Below, piece after piece: positions 621 to 54,482 of a DNA stretch of 64,000 bases. This DNA comes from Heteronotia binoei (lineage: Eukaryota). Location of the stretch: the NCBI RefSeq assembly GCF_032191835.1, contig NC_083237.1:24986001-25050000 (forward strand), read 5' to 3'. How positions within the stretch are numbered: the stretch's first letter is position 1; each line of letters opens with the position of its first letter. The translations under genes and the position numbers were made by a program. The notes beneath the pieces are model-generated. The model was not told the DNA's origin and searched no databases. It saw only the letters and a list, made by a program, of their open reading frames with translations.

Positions 621-847
621 GGACTAAAACATGGGGTCTAAAAAGCCCTTCCTGAAAAAGAGACAGCCCTGTTCTTCCAATCCTTTCTGAAATGTGAAGG
701 GATTACTAAATGGGGAGAAAAATGCAGTTTGCACAAGCTCTGGGGGGTAGGGCTGCCTACCTCCAGGTGGACCCTGGAGATCTCCTTGGATTACAGCTGA
801 TCTCCAGGCTACTGAAATCGGGACAGGGTAAAAGCTGGAATCGCCCG

Positions 848-2010
848 GAATGGGCATAAAACAATGTAGACTGTCACAAAAAACACTGGGATACATCACA
901 GACACTCGAGAACAATATTCTAGAACAGAAAAAGTGGAACTCACACGTCCTTATTACTCCATTCCAGACCAAAATGCCACCAGGACACCCCAGGACAGGC
1001 CAGAATGGGCATCAAACAACCTGGGCTGCCACAAAAAACATGGGCATGCATCACAGACACTCAAGAACAATATTCTAGAACAGAAAAAGTGGAACCCACA
1101 TGTCCTTATTACTCCATTCCAGACCAAAATGCCACCAGGACACCCCAGAACAGGCTGGAATGGGCATCAAACAACCTGGGCTGCCACAAAAAACATGGGC
1201 ATGCATCACAGACACTCAAGAACAATATGGGCCAAAATGCCTCCAGAATACCCCAGAACAGGCTGGAATGGGCATCAAACAACCTGGGCTGTCACAAAAA
1301 ACACTGGCATGCATCACAGACACTCGAGAACAATATTCTAGAACAGAAAAAGAGGAACTCACACATCATTATTACCCTGTTCCGGGCCAAAATGCCTCCA
1401 GAACACCCCAGAACGGGCATCAAACAACCTAGGCTGCCACAAAAAAACACTGAGATGTATCACAGACACTAAAGAACAGTATTCCAGAACAGAAAAAGCA
1501 GAACTCACAGGTCCTTATTACCCCATTCCGGGTCAAAATGCCTCCAGAACACCCCGGAACAGGATTAAACAACCTGGGCTGCCACAAAAAACACGGCCAT
1601 GCATCACAGACACTCGAGAACAATATTCTAGAACAGAAAATGCAGAACTCACTCATCCTTATTACCTTGTTCCGGGCCAAAAGGCCTCCAGAACTCCACG
1701 GAACATGCTTTAAACAATTAACGGAATAACATTTTGGAAATACAAATGCAAAAATGTCATTCTGTTATTTTCCTGTTCCAGCCAAAATGACTCCAAACTG
1801 GCTGGAATGAACATTTAACAAAAAAAGCTTAGCACCAACAAACATGGGATTCATTGAAGGCGCTTCAGAACGTTTTAGAAATCCAAATGCAGAAATACTG
1901 TGTACTTATTAACCTGTTGCAAGTTAAAATGCTTCTATAAATATTGTGTATTCATTTCCTCTTTCCAGGCCAAAATCTCTCTGGAACAGGCCAGAAAAAT
2001 TATTAAACAA
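848..2010 (+). repeat. Left-arm tandem array of ~155-bp units, decaying inward
   Basis: Unit anchors AATGGGCATCAAACAAC-like at ~850, 1005, 1160, 1268, 1413, 1559 and 1703, with degenerate copies near 1806 and 1995. Confidence 0.9.
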
Positions 2011-2689
2011 CAGTTCCTGCAAGTTCCTTAGGTAGAGCTAGGAGCATGGAGAGATAGGAGTATAGGTTTTTACAGATATGAGGGATGTCTTGGTTTGTGG
2101 AAAAAGCTGAAAAGTAGATTTAAAAATGCAAATCATGTGCCACAGCATAGCCAACATATAGATTCCAGCAAGGGGATTTCAAACAACTGAGAAGCAGAGA
2201 TGGTTTGCCATTGCTATACTATGCCACTTTCTGTCCCATCCAAACTAGCCATCAATGTTTAGGAGGCTGAAGTTGGTTCCTTATTCGCAGATCCTTATTC
2301 ATTCCTTATTCGTGAATTCAACCAAAAACACTGAAGAGAGTTTGAAAGCTCTGAACCACAAAATAAGCTCTGGACCCCCATATATCAAACACTCCCTTGT
2401 TCAGGAGATTCTGCCCTTTTAGAAGACAAGTCCTGCCTCATGGTCCAATCAGCGGTTCTCGTGCCAGCTGCTCCAAAACAAGGTGCCCCCAGGACACTCA
2501 AACAGACAGACACTGGGGACAGGCTGTACCCCAAAACAATGTTTGGACCACCCCAAGTGACACATCCCCACACTCAGGACACTGTCCCCTGCAAGAAGAC
2601 ATGCAGTGCTGCCCAGTCCAAACAATGGTTCCGGTCCCACATGAGCATTTGGCCTGGAACACAATATTTTTGTGTCTGGATTTCCAGAA

Positions 2690-3530
2690 TAGTATTCTAT
2701 CGTGCAGTTAACACATCTCAGTTTGTCAGAGTACTATTATTTTTCTAATGCCTGTTCAACCCTGTTCTGGAGGCATTTTGGCCCAAAATGTGCTAATAAA
2801 GACCTGTGAGTTCTGTTTTTTTCTGTTGTAGAATATTGTTCTGGAGTGTCTGCGATGCATCCCAGTGTTTTTTGTGGCAGCCTAGGTTGTTTGATGCCCG
2901 TTCCGACTGTTCTGGGGTGTTCCAGAGGCATTTTGGCCCAGAACAGGCTAATAGAGACGTGTGAGTTCCACTTTTTCTTTTCTACAATGCTGTGCTCGAG
3001 TGACTGTGAGTCATCCCGGTGTCTTTTGTGGCAGCCTAGGTTGTTTGATGCCTGTTCCTGCCTGTTCCATGGAGTTCTGGAGGCCTTTTGGCCCGGAACG
3101 GGGTAATAAGGACGTGTGAGTTCCGCTTTTTCTGTTCTAGAATATTGTTCTCGAGTGTCTGTGATGCATGCCAGTGTTTTTTGTGACAGTCTACGTTGTT
3201 TTATGCCCGTTCCGGCATGTTCTGGGTGTTCCAGAGGCATTTTGGCCTGGAATGGGGTAATAAAGACGTGAGTTCCACTTTTTCTGTTCTAGAATATTGT
3301 TCTTAAGTGTCTGTGATGCATCCCAGTGTTTTTCGTGGCAGCCCAGGTTGTTTTATGCCCGTTCCGGTGTGTTCTGGGTGTTCCAGAGGCATTTTGGCCT
3401 AGAATGGGGTAATAAGGACATGTGAGTTCCGCTTGATCTGTTCTAGAATATTGTTCTCGAGTGCCTGTGATCCATCCCAGTGTTTTTTGTGACAGTCTAC
3501 TTTGTTTTATGCCCATTCTGGGCTGCTCCA
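2690..3530 (-). repeat. Right-arm tandem array of about six ~154-bp units, inverted relative to the left arm
   Basis: Reverse-complement unit anchors at ~3515, 3361, 3209, 3054, 2900 and 2753. Confidence 0.9.
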
Positions 3531-4199
3531 GCCCGATCCGGCTTTTACCCTGTCCCACTGAAATTGGTTCCCGTGGCGAAAATGGCTGCCATCAAGAGCA
3601 GCAAACTATGGCATCCCTCTGAGATTCCTCCCCTCACCCTGCCCTTCCCAAACTCCACCCCGACATATACTAGAGATTCCAAACCAGGAGTTGGCAACTG
3701 TACCTGGGGGTTACTCCTTTCCCGTTCCTATTTCCAGGTGAGTCAAACAGGCATCAATCAAGCGTCTATTATTTCTAGTCTGGGTCAGTTTCATTTTGAG
3801 ATCACAGAGGGTAAAGGGCCGACGTACTACATCATGTCTAAAAGAAGCCCGAACAATTACCCTTTCTCCCTCAGGCCCAACGGGGGAATAGAATGGAAGA
3901 ATATCGTAATTTTTTCTCGCTAATCGTTCCCCATACGAGAGTCGTCCCATCCCTACAAAGCTTGGGGAACAAGAGATAAAAGCCATACATCCTTGTCCCA
4001 GTATTGCTCCCTTTACGTTACGATTTGAGAAAGCAAAGGCGCTTATTGTGGATGCATGGAAGCAGCCTGAGAGGCGGAAAGTGAAAAAAAGAGCAGACTC
4101 CAGCCTTCTTTATTTATGACAACCTGCAAATGTTAATTAGATAGCAAACATCTGGATCTGCTGGAGAGATTAGGCCATAAACCCCGCTCTTTCCCTTCC

Positions 4200-11200: not shown

Positions 11201-11603
11201 GGAGTCTCCCATCCAAAATCCTAACCAGGGCAGAACCTGCTTACCTTCCGAGATAAGCCTAGTATGGGCTATTCAGGTCAGTTCGAGTCACCAGCTGGAT
11301 TTTGCTGAGTCTGTTTAGTTTACTGTTGTAAACCACTGTGATTTTGGTAGGGTGAGCTAGAAAATTTAAAATAAGTACCTGCTCTAATTCCTTACAGTGC
11401 CGAGCAAGTGCCTGGCATTTACGTCGTGTCATTTCCTGCTGCCGCAACACTCCTTCCTCTTCCTCCTCCTCCTGCAGCCCTCCATCAGCAAATTCCACTT
11501 CTGTCTCTAGCTCACTCTCAAGAATATTACCACCAAAAAGAGGGGGAAGTGCCAGTTCTGAGCCAGGAGGCACTGAGAATTCTTCAAATCCTACACCCGC
11601 CAT
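8296..11603 (-). CDS. TFPT: TCF3 fusion partner (INO80 complex subunit F), 245 aa from the first visible ATG
   Basis: Minus-strand exons 11603-11379, 9959-9889, 9779-9710, 9272-9036, 8430-8296, all GT-AG, total 738 nt. Motifs [53 protein letters not shown] and IKTEEDF match TFPT. An acceptor at 11610-11608 implies an unlocated upstream exon. Confidence 0.95.
8636..8927 (-). mobile_element. tRNA-derived SINE, family A
   Basis: Near full-length reverse complement of the 6638 copy, with a (TTC)n-like tail. Confidence 0.85.
10120..10362 (-). mobile_element. tRNA-derived SINE, family A
   Basis: Same head and body as the 8636 copy, more diverged. Confidence 0.8.
11150..11283 (-). mobile_element. 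5S rRNA-derived SINE, degenerate
   Basis: The reverse complement resembles the 5S-like head at 28577 (GGTTAGGATTTTGGATGGGAGACT). Confidence 0.6.
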
Positions 11604-14295: not shown

Positions 14296-17200
14296 ATGTC
14301 TTTAGCAGATGAGCTTCTGGCTGACCTTGAAGAGGCAGCTGAGGAAGAGGAAGGAAGCTTTGCAGATGAGGAGGATGAGCCTGCCATTGAGGATGTCCAA
14401 GAGGAGATGCAAATGGATCTGGCAACTGATTCAGTCAAGAGTATTGCCAAGCTTTGGGACAGCAAGATGGTAAGAGAAAAAAGCCCGTTTTGGTGTAGCT
14501 CAGCATTGCCCAGCTTGATGTTTATGGTGGGGGAGATGGTTCTGTGCAGCTGAGTTGCTAAATGCGGCATGATGGTCTCCATCTATACCAAAGAACAATC
14601 CACAGTTTATTGCTGAGTATTGTATTGTTAAAAAGAATTTGAAAAATCCATGCGTCTAACTCAGTGTAACATCAAGGATTACAATATGACAAAAGCATTT
14701 CAGTCAAAGCTTACGTTATATGCCTTCAGAGCAAAAATTCAATGTACAGAAGTCCTACTTCTCAGTATGCAGAGGATAATGTGCAAATAGCTTCGCTAGC
14801 CTTTTTTTTGTGATAAATTATCTGACATTTATTTGTCTACAAAGTTCCCATTGTCTGTTCACCTAGTAAGTCCTGCACCTGATTCCAACCTGACCATTTT
14901 CCATCAAAATTAAATAAAGCAGTTATTTCATGAACAAACATCAGCCTCTCATGTGCCATTATCAAACCAGGACCAAAATAAGGAGTATAGTCTTTCCCTT
15001 CAGTTCCCTAGGCTGGGTCAGCATCTCATAACATACATTTAAATGACTGGGTGGGACAGTGAGAGTAAAACAAGGAAAAGGGGAAAAAAGGGTTGCTCAG
15101 CAAGAAAGACGATAAAGAGGGTGATCTAAAATAAGGAACGGTTTTGAGGTTTGTTTTAGTCAATTATCTCTGTCTTAGAGGTTAAAATACATAGAAGAAC
15201 TTGATTGGGGGTTAACTTAGCAGCTGGTCTCAAAGTATGATTAACAGCTTTTGGCATGTCCTCTTTGCAGTTTGCTGAAATCATGGTAAAGATTGAGGAA
15301 TACATCAGCAAACAGCCCAAAGCATCAGAAGGTAATGAAACACCCCTGGTTCATCTTATTTTTTAAAGAGAACTGCGTGCAGCCCCTCCCCCCATTTCTT
15401 CAGTGTGGTGGCATCTGCTGCGGCTCTCCTTCACTCTGCAATATAAAGTACACACACTTAGCTTTAAATACCCCATATGGTTGCTTATTTTGTTGTTTTT
15501 TCTCCTTCCTAGTTCTAGGCCCAGTTGAGGCTGCTCCTGAATATAGAGTCATTGTGGATGCCAACAATCTTACAGTGGAGATTGAGAATGAGTTGAGTGA
15601 GTGCAGGGTCTTATTGCCTGCTTTTGTGGGGGGAGGGGGAAGAACAGTAGAGTATGTTGAGTATTATACCTGCTGTTGTTCAGTGATATATGGCTAGCAG
15701 ATTGAGAGAGAGACTGGGTACAGTAGCAAGGGAGTGCAGTTGAGTAAGTAGAAGAGTTTAAGATGGGGAAGGGTTCATTTTTATTTATACTTCTGTTTTG
15801 TTTCTCCATTTTATCTTTACAACAATGATCCTGTGAGGAAGGGTAGGCTGAGAGAGACAAAGGGGTGGGCTACTGAGATCACACAGTGAGTTTCAAAGAC
15901 AGAATAAGGAGTAAAACCTCATTGTCCCAGATATCCTACTCTGATCTTCTAACCACTACACCATTCTGGCTCTCTCTATGTGAGCCTAGTGCCTCAGATC
16001 AGTTTTGATGGAAGCTTTTGCTTTGCCAGGAAATCTTGTCTATGCTGGCCAATTTGTGAAGGGGTTTATTTCCTAACAGGATGCATGGGCTGGTATTTTC
16101 CTAGTGACTTGCTTTTGTTCTCTGGAATGTAAATATATCCTTGGTTGCTTTCTGTTTTGATGGGTCTCTTTTTGCCATTTCTCTCCAGACATTATTCACA
16201 AATTTATCCGGGATAAATACTCTAAGCGATTCCCAGAACTGGAATCCCTTGTTCCTAATGCTTTGGATTATATCCGAACTGTCAAGGTATTGGCTGTTTT
16301 GAAATATATGAAGTCTATCTAGGCTGTCTTGAAGAAGCTGGGGCTTCATGTGGGTAAATCATGTGCCCCACTTCTGGGTCATGCCTCCTTCCTTCTTTAC
16401 AAAAGCTTAATCCAAAATTTCAAACCAGAATTCTTCAGGGGGAGGTCCAAGAGTTAAGTTTTGGTTGTAGTACATTTGCAGTATTTCCTAACCTAATATG
16501 TTCAGAGATCTTCAGTTTTAAGAAGTCCCTTTATTTATTCTTAAGATGTCTGTTGCTTGCAGGAACTGGGCAACAGCTTGGATAAATGCAAGAACAATGA
16601 AAACCTTCAACAGATCCTCACCAATGCTACCATTATGGTGGTTAGTGTCACAGCATCCACTACCCAAGGGTAAGAGGGGAATCTGAAGAACCCAAGCAAG
16701 CATTTGGGAGGTGAATGTGATGTGGCCTAAACTGATATGAAACAGAATAAGTGGAGAATAACAGAATTGTAAAGTAGGAGGAGTTTAGTGTCTGGGACAG
16801 GAGTGTTAACTTGAGTCCCTGCTGAGCTGTGAAAGCTCAAATGGTGGCTTTTTTCAAAAGTGTTCTGTGCATAGTTGATTTGTATACTTTTTTAGTCCAT
16901 GCAAGAAAGGGAAAAGGAGACTAAAAATGTAAGATTGGTCTTTCATAGTATATTTTGGGGGCAAATAGTAATGTGAGCTACACTGTACCTGGAAATCTAT
17001 GAATATTGCTGCTACCCCACCATGGATACAGAGGTATGCTTTCTTTCAAAAAGGAAGACTTGCAAGCCTTCAGAAGTATTTCAAGTACAGACATTTCATT
17101 CTCCAAGCCCCTTCCTGATACCTCTCCAGGTTGGGTTCCCCTATCCCTTTGTTCATTCTCTCATTTTGTAACGCATTTACCAAATAATGAAGAAATTGCT

Positions 17201-35295: not shown

Positions 35296-54482
<19,187 letters not shown>

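Follow-up and report, generated by a model that had tools for sequence, protein, structure and literature searches.

The window analysed here, a stretch of 64,000 nucleotides (64 kb) from the gecko Heteronotia binoei, contains parts of the genes TFPT, PRPF31 and CNOT3, in an order that matches human 19q13.42. The coding features are as follows.

11262-11603, minus strand: open reading frame of the first coding exon of TFPT (relatives search).
~14296 (14296-14553), plus strand: start of PRPF31 (Pfam).
38507-39019 and 40700-41047, plus strand: exons of CNOT3 (Pfam).

TFPT and PRPF31 stand head to head, ~2.7 kb apart, and it is beyond the 3' side of TFPT that the foldback element described in the following is located, at 820-3556 of the window (2737 bp). 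The closest relatives of TFPT come from contigs that are 1-1.7 kb long and are followed by one from a rattlesnake, which is too distant for an intergenic comparison; none of these contigs was suited to a search for an orthologous empty site. An open reading frame of 147 aa that extends from the right arm of the element into the flank (3480-3923, plus strand) was considered as an NDUFA3-like exon, which would have made the element intronic, but Pfam gave no match and a PDB search only returned artefactual repeat-protein matches, and the candidate was therefore rejected. From left to right, the element and its immediate surroundings are composed of the following parts.

749-819, no strand: left half of an interrupted palindromic, MITE-like host repeat (empty site aligned to uninterrupted copies).
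811-819, plus strand: left copy of the target-site duplication (TSD), ACTGAAATC (direct reading; host-repeat alignment).
820-835, plus strand: left terminus, GGGACAGGGTAAAAGC (pattern match, inverted to the right terminus).
845-1708, plus strand: left arm with six tandem units of ~155 bp, L1-L6 (TRF periods 155, 108 and 146; nhmmer unit map; unit alignment).
845-999, 1000-1154, 1155-1262, 1263-1417, 1418-1563 and 1564-1708, plus strand: the individual left-arm units (nhmmer, unit alignment).
1709-1996, plus strand: two to three degenerate inner left-arm units (weak nhmmer matches at 1727-1795, 1802-1935 and 1951-1996; alignment).
1997-2644, no strand: middle domain of ~650 bp, non-repetitive and non-coding (similarity, ORF and Rfam searches).
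2645-2751, minus strand: faint degenerate inner right-arm unit (nhmmer 2705-2645, E 0.16; short inverted matches to 1774-1789 and 1963-1979).
2752-3520, minus strand: right arm with five tandem units of ~154 bp, R5-R1 (TRF period 154, 5.0 copies; nhmmer).
3520-3368, 3367-3216, 3215-3061, 3060-2906 and 2905-2752, minus strand: the individual right-arm units (nhmmer).
3541-3556, minus strand: right terminus, the exact reverse complement of GGGACAGGGTAAAAGC (pattern match).
3557-3565, plus strand: right copy of the TSD, ACTGAAATT (direct reading; host-repeat alignment).
3566-3706, no strand: right half of the interrupted host repeat (empty site aligned to uninterrupted copies).

The sequence that the element interrupts belongs to an older family of palindromic, MITE-like repeats, which are ~215 bp long and have ends of the type TAGGGTTGCCAACCTCCAGG ... 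CCTGGAGTTGGCA, and the window contains three diverged copies of this family: the one that served as the target and two others at 44348-44563 and 45378-45591. We reconstructed the empty site by joining 720-819 to 3566-3730, with one copy of the TSD kept, and this joined sequence aligns without any gap across the junction to both uninterrupted copies (nhmmer E 1.9e-20 for 44348-44563, E 1.1e-12 for 45378-45591). In the multiple alignment, both 9-mers that flank the element occupy the identical nine columns of the two uninterrupted copies, and therefore one target stretch has been duplicated by a precise insertion. The element is a real insertion with a TSD in an older repeat, and the 9-bp flanking duplication that had been claimed in a first-pass annotation of this DNA is thereby confirmed, with the qualification that its two copies are identical at eight of nine positions and that an 8-bp reading is possible. 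The same annotation had named a local inverted duplication of a satellite as the finding that would overturn its interpretation. Such a duplication of a 155-bp satellite array, without any mobile element, could account for arms that are satellite-like arrays and for the fact that no second copy of the element was found in the 64-kb window, but it is at odds with the sharp boundaries marked by perfect inverted 16-mers and with the position in an otherwise continuous host repeat. As a local duplication would not yield a nine-base duplication at the edges of an insertion into a continuous host repeat, this explanation is largely refuted and for practical purposes ruled out; we consider it highly improbable.

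The only mismatch between ACTGAAATC and ACTGAAATT is at the last base, which is C on the left and T on the right and precedes a G, i.e., a CpG/TpG position. The TSD length, as read from this one imperfect pair, is 9 bp, possibly 8: from this copy it is also possible that the TSD is the perfect 8-bp repeat ACTGAAAT and that the extra C on the left belongs to the element. If C819 were indeed the first base of the element, the latter could be a foldback-shaped non-autonomous member of another superfamily that generates 8-bp TSDs (P-like as Galileo, hAT, Zisupton, or an unnamed one). The TSDs of Galileo are 7 bp, which counts against a Galileo-like P element, and for hAT, where an 8-bp TSD beside YARNG-type termini would be expected, there is no frame in which CAG/TAG ends would be flanked by matching repeats of 8 bp. 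An 8-bp TSD would also leave the two termini unequal by one base, and as 33% of the CpG positions within the element have decayed, one transition after insertion easily explains the C/T difference. In favour of such an origin, an independent evolution of the foldback structure in different lineages is possible (PMC4079207); with the points just listed, we regard an origin from an 8-bp superfamily as improbable.

The termini themselves are a perfect 16-bp inverted pair that starts with GGG (GGGACAGGG), and GGGACAGGGTAAAAGC has just two matches in the 64-kb window when up to three mismatches are allowed, which are the two ends of the element. Immediately inside, at position 17, the left and right ends differ by a CpG-type transition, and a comparison of 820-864 with 3500-3556 showed that the right end carries 10 extra bases (GCCGGATCGG) just inside the 16-bp terminus, which resemble a small duplication of the GCTGGA motif that follows. 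Further inward, most of the element consists of inverted arms that are built of tandem sub-repeats, as is the structural hallmark of foldback elements. Of the 2737 bp, the left arm takes up ~1.18 kb and the right arm ~0.8-0.9 kb, Tandem Repeats Finder reports arrays in both of them (848-1694 with periods of 155/146 bp and 2763-3525 with a period of 154 bp), and an inverted-repeat scan pairs these arrays in many registers. The individual units were mapped with an nhmmer profile that was built from three left-arm units. The clear units of the left arm are 78-94% identical to each other in pairwise comparison (unit alignment, identity matrix); L3 (1155-1262) has an internal deletion of 47 bp, and the first 10-11 nt are absent from L5 and L6. 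The inner left-arm units at 1709-1996 share 54-70% identity with the clear units, with a decay that increases inward.

The two arms also match each other as a whole. Starting at the tips, the segment 820-1708 aligns collinearly with the reverse complement of 2752-3556 through five units, with 639 matches and 99 mismatches, corresponding to 86.6% identity over 738 nt. When the arm units were paired in all 120 possible permutations, the in-register pairing ranked eighth by mean identity, which is a weak sign that the arms are mirror copies rather than independently grown arrays. With DNA energy parameters, the single-strand fold of the whole element has a minimum free energy of -808.8 kcal/mol, and in this fold 691 of the 889 left-arm bases (77.7%) pair with the right arm, the outermost pair being formed by bases 1 and 2737. 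One strand of the element is thus predicted to be capable of forming one long hairpin—a foldback in the literal sense. We are highly confident that 820-3556 is the insertion of a foldback-type transposon. The earlier description of perfect, G-initiated 16-bp inverted termini holds exactly for 820-835 and 3541-3556, and the arms of ~155-bp tandem units in opposite orientations, which had been described along with them, were recovered by TRF, by nhmmer and by the collinear alignment of the arms.

As to the age of this copy, the deviation of the units from their consensus amounts to 7.9% outside CpG sites and to 33% at CpG sites, and the arms are now ~13% diverged from each other. Because of this arm divergence and the decay of CpG sites, the copy is judged from its sequence to be old and probably immobile, with the reservation that part of the heterogeneity among units may be older than the insertion. 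Nothing suggests a function of 820-3556 or its use by the host, and we see in it an old inert insertion.

The middle domain (1997-2644) resembles neither the unit nor any other part of the 64-kb window. No Pfam match was obtained for the open reading frames of the element, including those of the middle domain and the long frames in the arms, and an Rfam search of the element gave no match either. These long arm frames result from the chance openness of all three frames on the top strand of the unit, and they are not genes. A unique centre of ~0.7 kb without transposase had been proposed before; the lack of a transposase stands in so far as Pfam found none, whereas the size has to be corrected, as degenerate units intrude into this region and leave ~650 bp free of units. 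Remnants of a transposase were also not detected outside the element: among the 72 open frames of at least 100 aa that lie elsewhere in the 64-kb window, Pfam recognized exons of PRPF31 and CNOT3 only.

With an insertion, modular arms and no coding capacity, the previously suggested reading as a non-autonomous element is sustained, and the question is which superfamily mobilized it. The suggestion had been MULE- or Merlin-like, and the features that bear on this part of the suggestion are TSD length and architecture only. Of the cut-and-paste superfamilies of eukaryotes, those suggested by a TSD of 9 bp are Mutator, broadly defined, and Merlin, and elements with a foldback layout are familiar from insects and nematodes. 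By analogy with described families, the most likely superfamily would be Mutator in this wide definition (MULE / Rehavkus / Drosophila FB type), an assignment that is drawn solely from the 9-bp TSD together with the long tandem-repeat TIRs. Mutator-type elements have TSDs of ~9 bp (8-11), which agrees with the 9 bp found here at 8/9 identity, again with 8 bp as a possible reading. Where a foldback layout and a 9-bp TSD occur together, they have mostly been linked to elements of the Mutator type (PMC4079207), and precedents exist for an assignment on such grounds: Tm1, a Mutator/Foldback family, is defined by its 9-bp TSD and composite tandem-repeat TIRs (PMC3169594), and Tetris was placed in Mutator by its TSD and its tandem-repeat TIRs, without a transposase (PMC4079207). 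Rehavkus elements combine TSDs of 9 bp with long TIRs that contain subterminal tandem repeats (PMC6446971; bioRxiv 10.1101/2024.12.02.626372), and the gecko element has both features. What speaks against the Mutator reading is that a broad survey obtained no convincing vertebrate MULE transposase and posed this absence as an open question (PMC6446971), and that foldback architecture arose in other superfamilies as well, Galileo being a P element (PMC3573991, PMC3688188).

Of these systems, Tm1 of root-knot nematodes resembles the gecko element in its composite tandem-repeat TIRs of variable length, its mostly 9-bp TSDs, its many non-coding, MITE-like members and the non-identity of the arms within one element (mean of 93% for Tm1), but the Tm1 repeats are 13-15 bp long and not ~155 bp, the Tm1 ends carry asymmetric 7-bp motifs instead of identical 16-bp ends, and the Tm1 transposase is known and the host is a nematode, whereas the gecko family is known here from one non-coding copy (PMC3169594). 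In Rehavkus of beetles and annelids, including the satellite-bearing copies of Tribolium, the likeness extends to a variable number of satellite-sized tandem repeats in the long inverted termini (PMC6446971; bioRxiv 10.1101/2024.12.02.626372). However, the defining feature of Rehavkus is its PHD-finger transposase, and its reported hosts are all arthropods or annelids, in contrast to the vertebrate host and the non-coding copy described here (PMC6446971). Tetris of Drosophila virilis and the classical Drosophila FB elements share with the gecko element an outer terminal domain, tandem repeats in the TIRs, a variable non-coding middle and TSDs of 8-10 bp, and for Tetris, too, no autonomous copy was found and the superfamily was inferred from the TSD (PMC4079207). 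There is no sequence relationship to either of them, the Tetris unit is ~220 bp long as compared to ~155 bp, and the hosts are insects.

The main competitor within the 9-bp range is Merlin, of which the gecko element could be a non-autonomous member that acquired long tandem-repeat arms. Merlin elements have a conserved terminal 5'-GG and TSDs of 8 or 9 bp, and several families contain internal tandem repeats, including one with a 163-bp unit (PMC8101967); the gecko element starts with GGG (GGGACAGGG termini), and its TSD can be read as 8 or 9 bp. The reported TIRs of Merlin, however, measure 24-462 bp, which is a range of known members and no strict rule, as compared to arms that are collinear over at least 738 nt, and a foldback architecture is untypical of Merlin (PMC8101967). 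As mentioned, foldback elements with 9-bp TSDs have mostly been Mutator-type (PMC4079207), and a comparison of 23 vertebrates did not detect Merlin in the green anole (PMC4350176). We therefore consider a Merlin origin unlikely, albeit less so than an origin from an 8-bp superfamily. Taken as a whole, the statement that 820-3556 is a dead, non-autonomous, foldback-type cut-and-paste DNA transposon (class II, TIR) whose partner is of the Mutator type is one that we favour with moderate confidence.

In a Mutator-type system, the DDE transposase that moved the element would have acted in trans and would be encoded by an autonomous relative at another place in the genome. This transposase would recognise the termini and probably also motifs that are repeated in every subterminal unit, and its cuts in the target would be staggered by 9 bp. 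At 991-999, 1146-1154 and 1254-1262, the last nine bases of the unit are CAGGACAGG or CAGAACAGG and resemble the terminus GGGACAGGG. While only a resemblance, this would fit subterminal repeats that derive from the terminus and provide extra transposase-binding sites, as has been proposed for Tetris and shown for Galileo (PMC4079207). Whether a complete system exists in the gecko is a more speculative matter: that its genome harbors a family of Mutator/Rehavkus-type foldbacks with a present or recent autonomous, transposase-encoding member, of which 820-3556 would be a worn copy, is a tentative proposal to which we give somewhat less than even chances.

Insect foldback elements whose repeats are of satellite size have been documented to give rise to new satellite DNA and to inversions. 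A foldback design in a gecko extends this insect-type architecture to amniotes, and if the family is of the Mutator type and has its own transposase, this bears directly on whether vertebrates have MULEs. An autonomous Mutator/Rehavkus-type member, if it truly exists, would represent a genuine MULE-type lineage in an amniote, and the gecko family would then also be a vehicle that spreads a 155-bp proto-satellite through the genome. That such a family is uncommon in amniote repeat catalogues and may be undescribed, as initially supposed, is in line with the literature: full-text searches of papers returned no published report of foldback elements in geckos or other reptiles. The gecko family may already be catalogued in Dfam or Repbase. 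A large survey of squamate repeats does not mention Mutator or Merlin (PMC6050309), and in the 23-vertebrate comparison human is the only species with a MuDR entry, while Merlin entries are confined to stickleback, zebrafish, Xenopus and human (PMC4350176).

Searches with parts of the element reached beyond the window. The spurious 163-aa open reading frame of the arm was compared with open reading frames on public contigs, where none of the 29 candidates with shared words was significant, and a 32-nt motif of the unit gave 0 matches in metagenomes. The 20-nt terminus was found on six unrelated metagenome contigs (L001-L006), which were rejected as relatives and attributed to chance, as their similarity to the element is confined to this exact 20-mer. 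Three of these contigs (L003, L005 and L006) also match one another in a second short stretch and are likely to contain one and the same microbial gene.
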